Below the pieces are notes generated by a model. That model was not told where the DNA came from. It searched no databases and worked only from the letters and a program-made list of their open reading frames with translations. From Epiperipatus broadwayi (taxonomy: Eukaryota > Animalia > Onychophora), in assembly GCA_028023455.1 (NCBI GenBank), contig JAQFVV010000004.1:17856001-17920000 (forward strand): a stretch of 64,000 nucleotides of DNA. Reading direction: 5' to 3'. The position numbers and the translations under genes were made by a program. Of the stretch, positions 8,706 through 62,874 are shown one piece after another (position 1 is the first letter of the stretch; each line of letters opens with the position of its first letter).

Positions 8706-9227
8706 TACATGAAAGAAGACAACACTTAAACAATACCAATATCAATAACAATCAACAATCTCAATTTGTTGTCAAGACAACCTCCTTTTAAATGCTTTTA
8801 CATTAACTTGCCCTATTTGTGTTTCTGTCAGTATGTCCACATTTTTTAATTAACTATGAAAAAAAATCAGTCCCTGTTTAGAACTCCAACTCACATCCTT
8901 ATGTTTACAAAGAAAACTCCTTAGCAACTAGGTCAACAGAAATACTATATTTGTAGGGTAAAATTGTGTTATTATAATATTGGTTTAATTAATACTTAAA
9001 TTAATTAAAAAGACGATATATAAATATGATTATATAGTAGATAATCACATATTTAAATTTAGAATTGTTAGTTAGAAGGTGTATTTTTTATTTTCACATC
9101 TTATTATTAAATTATAATTTTTGTCATACTTTCTGTAGTTTTAACCATTTTAAAAATAATATATAAATATAACTAAAAATTAAAAAAAGATGTAAAAAAA
9201 TTTTTTTTTTAAATGTTTTTATATATA

Positions 9228-9564
9228 GGGTAAATGAGCACAGACTTTCATACCACTCACCACTCTATCTCATATCCCTGATACACTTGAAGACATATAT
9301 GTCGAAAAGATAATTTCATGCAGCATGAAATATGTATATTGGTGATTATTTATCTTTTCGATATATGTGTTCAAGTGTATCAAAGATATGAGATAGAGTG
9401 GTGAGAAAGTCTGCCATGAAATACGTATATTGCTGCATGAAATACGTATATTGGTGATTATTTATCTTTTCGATATATGTGTTCAAGTGTATGATAGAGT
9501 GTGAGAAAGTCTGTGCTCATATACCCTATTATATTGATACAGGTATATAATAAGTTTGTATTTC
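9228..9564. mobile_element. Internally rearranged inverted copy of family F1
   Basis: Ends GGGTAAATGAGCACAGACTTTC / GAAAGTCTGTGCTCATATACCC. It carries repeated HHR 3' halves GAAATA(C/T)GTATATTG(G) and an F1-type tail ending TGTATTTCA. Confidence 0.8.
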
Positions 9565-17456: not shown

Positions 17457-18830
17457 GGTAATGATCTGATCTCTCATGTCAGCCAATTGATGGAGCTATT
17501 TCTAGCTAAATTGCTAAAAATATGTCATTTCCACAGCCACAGCCAAGCAGTCAGCCTTCTTTCTATGACATAACATAGAAAGAGTCTGTTGTACTCGGCT
17601 TCCAGCTACCGCTGGTGGCTTTTTTCTATGCTAAAAGCAAAGGAAAATGCCTTCATTGGTTGCCATAGAAGTTTATGTTACATAGTTTATCGTAATGCTG
17701 GGTTGTATTTTTTTGCTACAATATTATACTAGGGTATGTTAAGCACATCATGTCTAAATAATTTAATTTTTCATTGGTGACATCTTTTTTTTAATCTGAA
17801 TTGATGTACTCCTACCTTTTAACAGTATTGTGACTGTTCCATGATAAAGCTGTAAGCCTCATCAATTAGCTTTTAGGGTGGGGTAGTGCAATATTTTGAT
17901 GATTACACTGTAAGTCACATTTTGGCGAGTATTTTTCTGAGACAAATAAGATGGCAAATTCGAATGATCAAAAGTTGAAGCTATGGCAATTGTCAGACAC
18001 CCAAGCCAGCGCTGTAACATTTCTACAGCAGAACAACATCCTGCTGAAAGATAAGATCTGTTTGTGTGGCAAGACAATGCGACTTGAGGTCCATAAACAT
18101 CTTTGGACTTTCATCTGCAAGTCGTATTCTTGGCATCGCAAGTGTTCGTTCATAAAGGCAGCTGGTTTGAGGGATTCCATGTCCTTCGTCAAATGTTTAT
18201 GGTTGCTTCACTATTGGAACCGTGATGAGTTGAGTGTACATCATGCTGTCAAATGATCTTGTTGTCTCAAGATGCTTTTGTCAAGTGGAAGGAGGCTCTC
18301 CATGAGCTGTGTTGCAAAAGCCTTTCTTCAAGACTGTCCAGTCAAGTTGAAGAGGTTTGATAGTTGAGGTAGACAAAACACTTTTCAGTTGACGAAAGAA
18401 CTACCAAGGAAGAATGCTTCCTCAACAATGGATCTTTGGAGGGTTCTGCAGAAAGGCTGGGGAATGCTTTGCCACATCAGTTCCATCATGAACGACATCC
18501 ATCCTTCTGCAGGCCATACAGGCAATGTCAAGTGTGGATCCACCATTTACTCCGACTGCTGGAAGGCTATAAAACAACAGCTTTGGAGGCTGCAGGGTTT
18601 AAACACTTCACTGTTAACCATCGCTACAACTTTGTCGACCCTAAAACAGGCACTCACACCCAACACGTTGAACCTCTTTGGGGATGTCTGAAGTCCCAGA
18701 ACAGAAAACAGCATGGGACAGCCAGTAGTTCTCTGGACAATTACCTGTATGAGTTCCTGTGGTGATGTCTTCACAAGGCCAGAGATGATTTTTATGCAAT
18801 CTTGGGTGAGATGCAGTAGCTAAAGCAGAA
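17457..18830 (+). mobile_element. Merlin DNA transposon (left end plus transposase); right end not located
   Basis: The first ~50 bp from GGTAATG align with the left end of the TSD-defined Merlin at 37858. The 5' regions share further homology (17560-17680 vs 38030-38150). Confidence 0.65.
17951..18820 (+). pseudogene. Merlin/IS1595 (ISXO2-like) DDE transposase pseudogene
   Basis: Across frameshifts: N-terminal CxC zinc-ribbon region, VEVDKTLFS*RKNYQGRMLPQQWIFGG, IYSDCWKA, HFTVNHRYNFVDPKTGTHTQHVEPLWG, LDNYLYEFLW. Confidence 0.9.
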
Positions 18831-25386: not shown

Positions 25387-25802
25387 TAATTATAAATATG
25401 CGTTTTTTCGCATTAAATAGTGAAGCTATAATTATACTATAATGTATAATAGGTTTGCTTAGCGCTTTCGTGATTTAATGTTGGAATCTCATACTCATAG
25501 CTTTGTGAATGAAGACTGTTGTGATTTATTGTATACACATGCAAATGAGTTTGATTGTTTAATTAGTTAGTCCATTGTTTGGAGAGAGCAAAGCATGCCT
25601 CTCTCCAAACAATGGACTAACTAATTAAAAATTCAAACTCATTTGCATATGTGTACAATAAATCACAACAGTCTTCATTCACAAAGCTATGAGTATGAGA
25701 TTCCAACATTAAATCTCGAAAGCGCTAAACAAACCTATTATACATTATAGTATAATTATAGCTTCACTATTTAATGCGAAAAAAGTCGCAAATTTATAAT
25801 TA
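25387..25802. mobile_element. Near-perfect 416-bp palindrome (~200-bp arms, 10-nt loop) with a variant HHR-like motif in each arm
   Basis: 25387-25588 is the reverse complement of 25599-25802 with few mismatches. Loop is CAAAGCATGC. Confidence 0.9.
25686..25730 (+). ncRNA. Candidate hammerhead-like motif with A3-U8 core (mirror copy at ~25457-25501, minus strand)
   Basis: GCT-ATGAGTA-T-GAGATT CCAACATTA AATCTC-GAAA-GCGC-TA-A(A/G)C. Six-bp stem II, palindromic AGCGCT, 3-bp stem I (complete only in the left-arm copy). Confidence 0.45.
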
Positions 25803-59300: not shown

Positions 59301-60282
59301 CTGCTTACATATATTTTAGTTTAGTCATAGTTAATAGATGTCTCATTGTTTTGCTCAGCTTTGCTAGTCGGCCGGATTAAGATTAATTCTCATGTGCCAT
59401 CACTGTTATGTTATTCATTAGGTGTTAAATCTGGGGCTTAGAGAGTGGGTTCGAATTCAGGCTGGTCCCTGACCTAAATCTCGGGCTGGACTGGGTTTGA
59501 AGTACATTTTGTGAGTTCCAGCTCATGTTAGATGGATAAACATGTTTTGACCGGTACAATAGCTGGCTAGATCACGTAAAACATAAATTACTTTTGATGA
59601 AATAAACATGGAATAAATATACAGAATAGACAATATTACATATAAAGGAGTTAACATATTATTTAAACAAATAAAACAATAGTTTAATTACAAAGTATTA
59701 CAATTGTCAGACAAGATATAATATTCTTTTACCCTAAACATGCTTACATTATAGAATTTATAACATTTGAACAATAGTATTTATTTGATAAGCCATTTCT
59801 CCTCTATCATTTTTTTTTTACTTCACCTGCAGGGTGGAAAACAATGGTAGTTATTTATAAAGTTGGCAAAGTTTATTTTGATTAATTTTTAACATTAATG
59901 TTTCAATTAAATTTTATATTATTATCAAATTATATAATCAAGGACATATGCCATAGAGTAAATCTGTGGCCTTTAATATACTCTGGATATAATTCTATGT
60001 ATAGATGATCCTCACAAATACAATATATTTATTGATTTCATTAGCATTATAGTGTAGTCATATAAGTATATCTAATATGGGATAGTTATAACCAATATAC
60101 CTTTCTTGCAATAATAATTCTAGGGAGTGGGCACTTTAGGCCTGAATATCAATTTAATAACAACAATTTAATTACAGAGATTGTATTTCTATGTTGGACT
60201 ATTTCCATTATCTAATATGGAGTATTGAATGTCTTATTCCAAATACATTCAACTCTTAGTAATAGCACACAGTTAGTATATG

Positions 60283-60325
60283 CACAATGTTTCAAAAGGT
60301 ATTATTCTCCCCTCTTCTTCAGGTG
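60283..60325 (-). ncRNA. Minimal hammerhead-like motif (left arm)
   Basis: Minus strand CAC-CTGAAGA-AGAGGG GAGAATAATA CCTTTT-GAAAC-ATT-GTG. Confidence 0.55.
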
Positions 60326-60788
60326 TTACTGGCCTAACCAGTGACAGTACTAGCATGAAAATCAAAACTGGACCCTCAGATTCTTTGAGCATTGAATTTT
60401 AAAGTTAACACTCTAACCAACTGAGCCATCCTGTCAAAGGCAACAGTCAGTAGAAATTTCATATACTTATCTATGAGGTTCCTCCTGATTTCTCCACTTT
60501 TTTGCTAAGAGGAAAGTTGATTATTGTTTTCTATACATTATGTATAGTCATACTAGATTGACTTATGGGATTGTTTGCCATTGTCACGTGAACAGCTTCT
60601 TTAAATTTTCTTTTTCATAGCTTTAAGGAAGCTGCTCACATAACAATGGCAAACAATCCCATAAGTTAACACAGTGTGACTATACATAATGTATAGAAAC
60701 CACTAATCAACTTTGCTTTTAAAAAAATATTGAAAAATCAGAAGGAACATCATAAACAAATATATAAAATTTCTACTGACTTGCCTTT

Positions 60789-60865
60789 GGCAGCATGGCT
60801 CAGTTGGTTAGTGTTACCTTAAAATTTAATACTCAAAGAATCCAGGGGTCAAGGTTTGATTCCTA
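60789..60865 (+). promoter_or_regulatory. tRNA-like Pol III internal promoter (mirror copy 60360-60435, minus)
   Basis: A box TGGCTCAGTTGGTTAG and B box GGTTTGATTCC at tRNA-like spacing. Not an intact tRNA. Confidence 0.6.
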
Positions 60866-60895
60866 TGCTAGTACTGTCACTAGTCAGGCTAGCAG

Positions 60896-60939
60896 CACCT
60901 GAAGAAGAGGGAAGAATAATACCTTTTGAATTGTTGTGG
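60896..60939 (+). ncRNA. Minimal hammerhead-like motif (right arm, decayed)
   Basis: CAC-CTGAAGA-AGAGGG GAAGAATAATA CCTTTT-GAATT-GTT-GTG. With the left arm it implies ancestral GAAACGTTGTG. Confidence 0.5.
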
Positions 60940-62874
60940 ATATACTAACCTGTGTGCTATTACAAACAATTAAATGTATTTGGAATATTTAAATAAAGTT
61001 AAATTTTTCTAAAGACATTCAATACTCTTATTAGATGATGGAAATAGTCCAATATATAAATACAATTAAAATACCATCACCACAAACCTTCAGGAAAACA
61101 CTAATTACAGAGATGACTCTTTTGAATCTGATCCCTAATTTTAATAATACTACTTAATTAACTGAAATAATCTCCCAAAATTTACCGATCAAAATCATGA
61201 ATTAATCTACCATAGATATAGTATACTTTAACTATTCAACAGTGATCTAACAATTGCATTTATATTGCAAGTTCTACATACATAAAACTTATCTCACAAT
61301 AATAAAAGAAGAGCTAATTTATATACAAATGAACTCAATCAAATTTCAAAATAAACCTTTAACTTAAAATACTAATAATTATTTTACTTCATCTTTTTTT
61401 AATACTTGGACACTTTATATAATTTACAAGTGTGCACATTTGTGTTTAAGATAAGCATTATACTTTTGAATATTTATTTAATTGACAATTTTTACATGAT
61501 AAGAAAACTTTTTCTTATTAAAGGAGATAAACTTTTAATTAGCATGTACATACTAAAGAGAAAAAAAGTGAATTTCTATTTTAGCTGTTTTAAAATGCAG
61601 TTAGAGTATTTTAAAAGCTTAACAGCAAATGCTTTTGTTGTTTTTTTCCAAATAATTCACTTCTTCCTTTAATCATTCATAAAGTTTGTTACAATTAAAT
61701 ATTCACTAAAAGATCAGAAAATAAACTTAAAATGGATGCTACAGTCAAAACAATTTTTTTAAACTTAGACAGCAAAAGTTCTGAAGCGGAATTCTACAGT
61801 TCACTGTGAATGCGTTTTTTAGTCTAATTTTTCTCCTACAATGGTATATATTAATTGATTCAATTTATAAGTTGCCATGTCCTTTAACAATCTCTTATCT
61901 TTGAAATTAGAGATTGTCTTTGTTTCTTCATTTTGAATAGATTCCTTCAAAAATAGATTGGTCAGGTTCCACAGACCCACATTAGATTTCAGCAATTATT
62001 TCTCTTTTCTATTTGGTCATCCTAATGAGGATTTAATGTAGCTTGATAAAAATAAAAATCTAGACTGATTAATTTCAAAAAAATTTGACTAGATATAGGT
62101 TTGACCTTTTTTATTTTTAACATCTTTGATTTTGTTTTTCACAATTTTGATAATCTCTTATTTTCAACACTTTTAAGATCTCATTTAATTTTAATTATAT
62201 GAATTTTAAAAACATACTTATTATTTAATTAATTGAATTTCAAAATACTATAATTACTAAATTGCTTGAATTTATTCCTGAATTCAAGTCTCAAAATAGG
62301 CATAATCTTTTTTATTAACTTATTTTTAATTTAATTATTTAATATCTATTTCTTAAGTTCTTTTGCAATACATTTCATTCTTTTAATTAATCTTTAATAA
62401 GAAATACAATTTTAACATAATTTATATAATTTACTAGTTTCTCTTAAATTTAAACTTTCTTAACAAACTGATTATTTAATATTGGTTAAAATACGACATT
62501 TAGTAATTTATTATAACATTTAAACATTAACTATTATAATTATTTTTAATCCTTTATTTTAAGATATTAATTTTATTTTATATAATTTTTTTAAAAATGT
62601 TAGTACTGCTATATTTATTAACTATCCTCACAATTAAAAAGCAGTTTATTGTCATGTAAAAGCTTACATGGCTGACAGTGAAATGAATACATTACTCACT
62701 TCAATATATATAACAAAAATGGAAAATTATAATAAAATACTCCTACCAGGTAACTGGGAAGATTTTAAATTATTACGACTTATATTTAACTATCATTGCT
62801 TTATTTTTTATATATATTAATCTGAGGACAGAAATTTAACATTTATAATAATTGTGTATCTTCTTCATGTAGAA

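Follow-up and report, generated by a model that had tools for sequence, protein, structure and literature searches.

Insertions of Penelope-like elements (PLEs) follow a recognizable format, in which an inverted 5'-truncated copy is accompanied by a tail of 30-40 bp at one end (Craig et al. 2021, PMC8557442). In Adineta, these insertions show inverted pLTRs, a 31-bp tail and target site duplications (TSDs) of 8-10 bp (Arkhipova et al. 2013, PMC3846280). Head-to-head is the commonest arrangement of the pLTRs, for which self-priming was proposed, and pLTRs are sufficient in trans (PMC3846280). The minimal hammerheads of Penelope elements have, as a hallmark, an unpaired base after A9 (Cervera and de la Pena 2014, PMC4209133).

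Two other groups of hammerhead-bearing repeats are relevant here. The schistosome repeat Sm-alpha is tRNA-Gln-derived and apparently transcribed by Pol III (PMC2770079, PMC6765202), and its type I hammerhead is canonical, matching the Rfam motif and cleaving in vitro (1998 study cited in PMC6765202; PMC2770079). Metazoan non-LTR retrozymes are defined by tandem units of 170-400 nt, bounded by classical hammerheads of type I and expressed as circular RNA (Cervera and de la Pena 2020, PMC7229834; bioRxiv 10.64898/2026.07.22.740005), and they were proposed to derive from the terminal repeat of PLEs as non-autonomous elements (Li, Clavereau and Pollet 2026, bioRxiv 10.64898/2026.07.22.740005).

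Penelope terminal-repeat hammerheads, schistosome tRNA-derived hammerhead SINE-like repeats and inverted Penelope insertions with a one-sided tail have already been described singly. The locus presented here is a clean and fully bounded example that unites all three known ingredients in a very abundant family. We read it, with a probability of about 0.68, as an old and decayed head-to-head pair of an abundant non-coding retroelement that was copied in trans by the machinery of a Penelope-like element.

Architecture of the insert

Coordinates are positions within the window, that is, the whole stretch of 64,000 nt that was analysed. The arms were delimited by arm alignment, inverted repeats and BLAST, and the following features were assigned:

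60182-61101: whole insert, 920 bp, two inverted arms in head-to-head orientation
60169-60181, no strand: left copy of the TSD, TAATTACAGAGAT, 13 bp, exact direct repeat
61102-61114, no strand: right copy of the TSD, TAATTACAGAGAT, 13 bp, exact direct repeat
60182-60605, minus strand: left arm, antisense copy of the unit, no tail
60606-60621, no strand: centre (loop), 16 nt, non-palindromic, junction of both 5' ends
60622-61066, plus strand: right arm, sense copy of the unit
61067-61101, plus strand: tail (terminal extension), 35 nt, right arm only, not in the left arm according to the arm alignment
60622-60795, plus strand: right-arm leader, spanning about 174 nt between centre and A box, of high copy number (word depth 28,000-730,000 in run X1, see below)
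60429-60605, minus strand: leader of the left arm, mirror copy
60790-60866, plus strand: tRNA-derived module of the right arm, A box 60796-60807, B box 60853-60863
60365-60435, minus strand: tRNA-derived module of the left arm, A box 60417-60428, decayed B box 60358-60369
60868-60883, plus strand: hairpin of the right arm, 5 bp, between the tRNA-derived module and the hammerhead-like motif, seen also in the arm fold
60338-60353, minus strand: hairpin of the left arm, mirror copy

A sequence-only reading of this DNA had described a palindrome of about 900 bp with a 13-bp TSD, and this description was borne out, the 920-bp insert being bounded by exact copies of TAATTACAGAGAT on both sides. The arm order that it gave (leader, A and B boxes, hairpin, CUGAAGA...GAAA-type motif and 3' region) was found in both arms, with the B box decayed in the left one. 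The comparison of the two arms by BLAST gave 80.5% identity with gaps counted, while the aligned bases comprise 362 matches and 58 mismatches (86%); in the arm alignment, 25 nt of the right arm are deleted from the left arm. The insert is asymmetric, as 35 extra bases end the right arm only, directly before the TSD. The locus is a single, old and decayed insertion event with one TSD, whose arms drifted by about 14% at aligned bases after the insertion and whose hammerhead motifs are now both broken. With an arm divergence of 14%, finding the 13-bp TSD still exact is no anomaly (P ~0.14). RNA folding of the arms was better than that of shuffled sequences (z = -3.47 and -2.19). BLAST found no further copies of the right arm within the window. 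A search of the window for the empty site with the joined flanks gave no convincing match, a 21-nt similarity at 59675-59695 not extending further.

The sequence-only reading could not match the inverted dimer to a described SINE. In the literature at large it is not without match, since head-to-head inverted repeats, a one-sided tail and a short TSD are together the format of PLE insertions (PMC3846280, PMC8557442). As in PLEs, inverted terminal units lie head-to-head (and other insertions of the family also appear to do so), the tail is one-sided (35 nt here with respect to 30-40 bp in PLEs), the TSD is single and short, the central junction is short and non-palindromic, the terminal unit includes a hammerhead motif, and the structure belongs to a kind that is mobilisable in trans without an ORF. 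The locus differs from PLE insertions in the length of the TSD (13 bp as compared to 8-10 bp in Adineta), in the presence of a tRNA-derived module within the unit, and in having no RT/GIY-YIG ORF between or near the arms. It is this insertion format only that points to a probable Penelope partner for the insert.

The repeat family and its two 3' ends

Other copies of the unit were collected as contigs from four public runs, namely run X1 and three runs with other species labels. From run X1, 87,225 contigs were placed on the insert, and thousands more came from the three other runs; the label RNA carried by a run is no proof that the family is transcribed. The depth of the family is at background outside 60174-61135, and the limits of the family coincide with those of the insert. 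In fact, the depth climbs from about 900 to about 290,000 immediately after the left TSD, and both TSD copies sit where it drops to background. The highest depth was measured over the 3' part (about 7 million), and lower values over the leader. At 60602-60616, contigs from other copies either break off or diverge, with a loose end at 60612. The family is an extremely abundant, ORF-less retroelement with a unit of about 450-490 nt. Two conserved patterns of the family had no match in metagenome, prokaryote-genome or viral contigs.

At the 3' side, 429 contigs of other copies pass into unrelated flanks at 61065 and 364 depart at 61100, and in both cases the flanks beyond are heterogeneous and AT-rich. 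The family has two alternative recurrent 3' ends, 35 nt apart, with and without the tail. The depth over the tail is about one quarter of that of the preceding bin. The tail is not copied from elsewhere in the arms, where its best local match is 8 nt long.

Among the joints listed that run from left to right, six out of eight are near-symmetric head-to-head pairs with four different truncation points and the remaining two join a truncated copy to the distal tail, bearing in mind that foldback joints in short-read contigs can be assembly artefacts. Joints that appeared to connect opposite strands link mirror-image positions of the two arms; they were rejected as real inversions, a contig probably taking the arm that it matches better.

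The same data bear on the possibility that there is no separate family, and that each arm is instead a terminal repeat (pLTR or 3' end), truncated at its 5' side, which belongs to a coding Penelope-like element and happens to contain a tRNA-like module and a hammerhead. We consider this rather unlikely. The bias of family depth to the 3' end would be explained, some contigs continue for 30-83 nt upstream of the 5' ends of the arms, and solo and inverted pLTRs are known (PMC3846280). However, numerous contigs from other copies stop or branch at 60602-60616, as expected of a common 5' end, and there is no coding sequence nearby: no ORF of at least 120 aa was found anywhere in the window, in which neither a Penelope RT nor a GIY-YIG coding region was detected.

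The hammerhead-like motif

Each arm contains one hammerhead-like motif:

60896-60938, plus strand: motif of the right arm, CAC, CUGAAGA, helix II, GAAU for GAAA, UGUU-GUG, core broken
60283-60325, minus strand: motif of the left arm, CAC, CUGAAGA, 6-bp helix II, GAAAC-AUU, GUG

The core CTGAAGA is present in both arms (60899-60905 on the plus strand and 60316-60322 on the minus strand), with no difference listed in the family majority letters. In the left arm it continues with GAAACATTGTG and in the right one with GAATTGTTGTG, in agreement with the sequence-only reading. A full descriptor of the minimal hammerhead gave one match in the window, in the left arm, as compared to none in 400 simulated windows of 64 kb (about 51 Mb over both strands). 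The occurrence of the motif is non-random.

The positions G12-A13-A14 and A15.1 read GAAA in the left arm and GAAT in the right arm; because the family majority letter at 60931 is A, GAAA is restored in the right-arm motif. The majority letter is C at both 60925 and 60296, and the change at 60296 turns the 3' strand of helix II into CCUCUU. With the majority letters, a hammerhead-compatible helix II needs an unpaired A after A9, and the lowest-energy fold adopts a competing register of helix II that consumes A9; the folding used the 63-nt motif with only three majority or inferred letters changed. The conserved G10.1-C11.1 pair is absent from both arms, in which 11.1 is U and the pair is G-U or A-U, with no majority change listed. 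Helix I consists of 3 bp (CAC/GUG), as the sequence-only reading had cautioned; this length is within the range of 2-5 bp of the minimal Penelope type, and the majority letters do not extend it.

The dinucleotide at 15.2-16.2 is CA in the left arm, and therefore not palindromic, and TG in the right arm; positions 16.1 and 17 are both U. At an inferred CG, the two arms show C/T and A/G differences, and the CpG observed/expected ratio is 0.35 in the window, which makes the suggested opposite CpG decay in the two arms plausible. The ancestral string GAAACGUU, which had been reconstructed on this basis, is consistent with such decay as far as the inferred CG is concerned, but it is found in neither arm.

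Like the minimal PLE hammerheads (PMC4209133), the motif has CUGANGA and GAAA cores and no helix III of its own; helix II is long (6 bp), one base after A9 is left unpaired (with the family majority letters), helix I is short and, if CpG decay took place, a palindromic CG would have stood at 15.2-16.2. It differs in the G-U or A-U pair that replaces G10.1-C11.1, and in the CG, which is intact in neither arm. The assignment to the minimal Penelope type made in the sequence-only reading stands with regard to CUGAAGA, GAAA, the unpaired base and the short helix I, but not to the G10.1-C11.1 pair. The motif is plausibly a minimal type I hammerhead devoid of that hallmark and, judging from its sequence, a putative ribozyme. 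The Rfam hammerhead models (types I, II, III, HH9 and HH10) gave no match, whether 2.3 kb and 186 nt were searched at E <=10 or the whole window at E <=1; a poor score against these models would be expected for a motif without helix III.

It may be asked whether an ordinary tRNA-derived repeat, with no ribozyme ancestry, contains the hammerhead-like string by chance. The missing match in Rfam, the missing G10.1-C11.1 pair, the 3-bp helix I, the competing register of helix II and the fact that the finding was picked from a scan of many windows are all in line with this possibility, which nonetheless appears doubtful: the full descriptor was never matched in the 400 simulated windows, with the majority letters CUGAAGA is preserved, GAAA is regained and helix II becomes better in the register with the unpaired base after A9, and the motif lies in an element with a Penelope-type insertion format.

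The leader and the tRNA-derived module

The A box TGGCTCAGTTGG was found in both arms; as for the B box, the right arm has GGTTTGATTCC and the left arm a decayed version. The left-arm module scored 21.6 bits against the Rfam tRNA model, whose cut-off is 29 (E = 0.01 for a search of 101 nt), the right-arm module had no Rfam tRNA match, and ARAGORN called no tRNA. The tRNA likeness of the module is sub-threshold. Downstream of it, the sense strand contains a short run of T:

61004-61008, plus strand: T5 run, predicted Pol III terminator, 60-95 nt before the 3' end of the unit

This run is T7 in the consensus of contigs from other copies (loose end at 61029), and runs of T are not avoided on the sense strand.

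Both arms, and contigs from other copies as well, have about 174 nt of family sequence upstream of the A box. The sequence-only reading had left to be checked whether the leader is part of the repeat unit. It is: in contigs of other copies, under three species labels, the leader is joined to the tRNA-derived module. With type 2 Pol III promoters, transcription begins a short way upstream of the A box. Since the module is internal and the T run precedes the 3' end, the full template could not be a transcript initiated from the A and B boxes of the unit. The proposal of a tRNA-derived SINE is therefore retained in part: an A/B-box module followed by a minimal hammerhead-like motif is present, but the description as "tRNA-headed" is not supported, as the module lies about 174 nt inside the unit. 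The label "Pol III SINE" agrees poorly with the leader upstream of the A box and with the T5/T7 run before the 3' end.

The repeat resembles Sm-alpha, as described, in having a tRNA-derived Pol III-type module followed by a hammerhead and in being a non-coding repeat of very high copy number. It differs in that its motif is minimal, without helix III and without a match in Rfam, and in that its unit is longer, the tRNA module being preceded by a leader of 174 nt. A genuine tRNA-headed SINE like Sm-alpha, with an internal Pol III promoter as the source of the template and a hammerhead for the trimming of multimeric transcripts, would agree with the proper spacing of the A and B boxes in both arms, with the 21.6-bit tRNA match and with the promoter-then-hammerhead order of Sm-alpha (PMC2770079, PMC6765202). 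This explanation is nevertheless quite improbable. The 174-nt leader before the A box was copied here and in other copies, at odds with the start site generally known for Pol III; the T5-T7 run precedes the last 60-95 nt, which are the most abundant part of the family; and T runs persist on the sense strand.

With respect to retrozymes, the likeness consists in a non-coding, structured repeat that bears a hammerhead. The differences are the inverted pair, with units of about 445-480 nt at this locus, the general unit length of about 450-490 nt and the minimal motif.

Mode of insertion

In the mechanism that we favour, namely Penelope-dependent insertion, the unit, which consists, in this order, of the leader, the internal tRNA-derived module, the small hairpin, the minimal type I hammerhead-like motif, the 3' region and an optional 35-nt tail, would be copied in trans by the enzymes of a Penelope-like element, its reverse transcriptase and its GIY-YIG endonuclease. 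The 13-bp duplication would come from nicks with a stagger of 13 bp. Reverse transcription would begin at the 3' end of the unit, and the head-to-head pair might be produced either by turn-back of the cDNA (self-priming) or by a second priming event on the other nick. In the resulting insertion the two 3' ends would point outward, and only one of them would have the tail. Active copies would possess, after GAA, a two-fold symmetric ACGU by which two motifs might pair into a joint helix III and cleave, as proposed for the minimal Penelope hammerheads. The dependence on Penelope, the ribozyme activity and the turn-back step are what we infer, in this scheme, to have operated in the family.

Cut-and-paste elements do not usually generate a TSD of 13 bp. 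A DNA foldback transposon or long-TIR MITE with a SINE captured in its terminal inverted repeats, suggested by the large palindrome with its TSD and by the further foldbacks in the window, is very improbable in view of this unusual TSD length, of outer ends that are asymmetric by 35 nt, and of a family with 3'-biased depth, foldbacks at many truncation points and two alternative 3' ends.

Penelope-dependent insertion might also be given a broader and much more tentative form, which we regard as rather unlikely. The tRNA-derived module could be a working part, either a Pol III promoter or a tRNA-processing signal, of a class of non-autonomous, Penelope-dependent elements present in several species of this animal group, whose arbitrarily truncated head-to-head insertions would record the turn-back of the reverse transcriptase. 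If this were true, the family would offer the first natural, high-copy read-out of the Penelope integration mechanism, and SINEs of the Sm-alpha type would be tied to the Penelope machinery. The locus alone is a dead copy of a common repeat; the family could show whether elements of the Sm-alpha type ride on Penelope enzymes and how head-to-head insertions arise.

Some minor observations were made in the window. Rfam microRNA matches at 60542-60684 (MIR851, MIR4208 and others) were discarded as artefacts of the central hairpin of the palindrome, as they occur on both strands and far below the gathering scores. A Pfam search of ten ORFs of the window returned only a weak IS1595/Merlin-type transposase fragment, and several other foldbacks occur in the same window.

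Structure of the insertion

The sequence TAATTACAGAGAT is found, exact in both places, at 60169-60181 and 61102-61114, as a target-site duplication (TSD) on either side of a 920-bp insert composed of two arms:

60182-60605, minus strand: left arm, inverted relative to the right arm
60622-61066, plus strand: right arm, inverted relative to the left arm

The arms are joined by a non-palindromic centre of 16 nt and align collinearly from end to end, with 80.5% identity including gaps (BLAST); the aligned bases comprise 362 matches and 58 mismatches, 41 of the latter being transitions. The right arm is followed by 35 additional bases (61067-61101) ahead of the duplication, and 25 nt of it are missing from the left arm. 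Given the 14% divergence of the arms, the probability that the 13-bp duplication stayed untouched is about 0.14, and its perfection is therefore unremarkable. In the run of the probable source organism (X1), contigs reach a summed depth of about 700-2000 over the immediate flanks (60100-60173 and 61136-61172), as compared to about 30 for single-copy sequence. For this reason, the insertion site may lie within an older, moderately repeated sequence, of which no second copy was found elsewhere in the 64-kb window.

Extent of the family in public contigs

Logan contigs of four public runs were mapped to 60100-61200 at 80% likeness. From the run of the probable source organism 87,225 contigs matched; a second species label and two runs tentatively taken as RNA contributed thousands of others. 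In metagenome, prokaryote-genome and viral contigs, two conserved patterns of the family found no match. Outside 60174-61135 the summed word depth stays at background, and inside it rises to about 7 million, which indicates that the limits of the family coincide with those of the insert. The leader, which is the innermost part of each arm, is also high-copy, and contigs of other copies (80-87% alike) span the tRNA-derived module together with the entire leader, reaching 60602-60616; this establishes the leader as part of the repeat unit, a point that the sequence-only reading had left to be checked. Depth peaks in the 3' part, the pattern expected of 5'-truncated retro-copies, even if part of the variation must stem from local divergence of the copy in the window. 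Contigs leave the family at 61065 (429 contigs) and at 61100 (364), in both cases entering heterogeneous AT-rich sequence; therefore two recurrent 3' ends exist, without and with the 35-nt extension.

Of the eight left-to-right arm joints listed for other copies, six are near-symmetric head-to-head pairs with four different truncation points, and in the other two a truncated copy is fused straight to the distal tail. This support for the head-to-head format is suggestive only, since short-read contigs may include artefacts. In one contig of another public run (X9), the distal tail (61071-61101) is immediately preceded by family-unrelated sequence containing CTGATGAG, which is a hammerhead core string in canonical form; another hammerhead-bearing element, possibly an autonomous partner, may share this tail.

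Insertion format

The inverted dimer with its TSD, which the sequence-only reading could not match to a described SINE, fits the documented format of Penelope-like insertions (PMC8557442, PMC3846280). In these, a unit is adjoined by an inverted 5'-truncated copy, most commonly head-to-head, with junction palindromes that the authors read as self-priming; a "tail" of 30-40 bp (31 bp in Adineta vaga) often stands at one end only, TSDs are short (8-10 bp in A. vaga), and terminal repeats suffice for mobilisation in trans (PMC8557442, PMC3846280). We count a match on each of these points, with a TSD of 13 bp and a tail of 35 nt at our locus, so that the arrangement is a signature of this retroelement class. 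Because neither reverse transcriptase nor GIY-YIG coding sequence is present in the 64-kb window, it is from the insertion format, and not from sequence relatedness, that we infer a dependence of the family on Penelope. No ORF of at least 120 aa is present in the window in any frame.

The tRNA-derived module

From the centre outward, each arm consists of a leader of about 174 nt, a tRNA-derived stretch, a 5-bp hairpin, a hammerhead-like motif and about 100-130 nt of 3' sequence. Both arms carry the A box TGGCTCAGTTGG. Of the B box GGTTTGATTCC, the right arm has an intact copy and the left arm a decayed one. The Rfam tRNA model scored 21.6 bits in the left arm only (gathering score 29), and ARAGORN called no tRNA; the tRNA likeness is genuine yet weak. 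Folded as RNA, the arms are more stable than shuffled controls (z = -3.47 and -2.19), which agrees with a structured RNA element and is not decisive.

The unit had been taken for a tRNA-headed Pol III SINE. The module lies within the unit, preceded by 174 nt of family sequence. A sense-strand run of five T, lengthened to T7 in the consensus from contigs of other copies, occurs 60-95 nt ahead of the 3' end; no part of the family is more abundant than the sequence downstream of it, and sense-strand T runs are not avoided. A transcript initiated at the A and B boxes of the unit itself would miss the leader as well as the 3' end, and the unit is probably not a Pol III SINE in the simple sense. The module may be the fossil of a captured SINE, may be active in tandem arrays only, on the model proposed for Sm-alpha, whose cleaved units end up with the promoter at their 3' end (PMC6765202), or may have a putative role in RNA processing.

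The hammerhead-like motif

The segment reads CAC-CUGAAGA followed by a 22-nt hairpin segment, after which the left arm has GAAACAUU-GUG and the right arm GAAUUGUU-GUG. A descriptor was built from CTGANGA, a helix II with a minimum of 5 bp and no more than one unpaired base, GAAA-NN-U-H and a helix I with a minimum of 3 bp. Over both strands of the window it matched exactly once, in the left arm; 400 simulated windows with matching dinucleotide composition gave no match. The family majority letters retain CUGAAGA and restore GAAA at 60931, where the right arm reads GAAU. At 60296 and 60925 they turn the 3' strand of helix II into CCUCUU, with which hammerhead-compatible pairing needs one unpaired base after A9. 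Cervera and de la Pena count this unpaired base among the hallmarks of the minimal Penelope hammerheads, in which helix II is long, helix I is short and 15.2-16.2 is palindromic (PMC4209133).

Against this, the conserved G10.1-C11.1 pair is replaced by G-U or A-U, helix I has 3 bp only, the majority letters add no pair to it, and the lowest-energy fold favours a register with A9 paired. The Rfam hammerhead models did not match, even with a 186-nt stretch at E = 10, as expected of a motif without helix III. That the CA and TG of the two arms derive from one ancestral CG is reasonable, given a CpG observed/expected ratio of 0.35 in the window with TpG and CpA in excess; the reconstructed GAAACGUU is itself present in neither arm. 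We consider the motif to be hammerhead-derived with a probability of roughly 0.75, and give about even odds to the prediction that master copies actually cleave. At this locus both motifs are broken.

Schistosome SINE-like repeats with a tRNA-derived part and a hammerhead are known, Sm-alpha deriving from tRNA-Gln (PMC2770079, PMC6765202), and minimal dimer-type hammerheads occur in Penelope terminal repeats (PMC4209133); the case has lately been made that animal retrozymes are non-autonomous and derive from these Penelope repeats (bioRxiv 10.64898/2026.07.22.740005). These known features come together in the present family, which also bears a clear insertion signature of the Penelope type.

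Other features of the window

Foldback insertions recur across the window. A young one at 25387-25802 has 186-nt arms, 97% complementary, around a 10-nt centre; another at 528-705 has 67-nt arms with 87% complementarity, and at 9225-9529 inverted repeats and 112-nt direct repeats are nested in a complex pattern. At the latter two sites the Rfam microRNA matches are spurious. A 109-aa ORF at 18436-18762 (plus strand), within a locally GC-richer stretch at 16-20 kb (33% GC), weakly matches the ISXO2/IS1595-type DDE transposase domain, its 22.8 bits falling short of the Pfam cut-off; it probably represents a decayed Merlin-like DNA transposon. With a GC content of 21-33%, strong depletion of CpG, TpG and CpA in excess and no ORF of at least 120 aa, the window looks like a repeat-rich, gene-poor part of a methylated animal genome.
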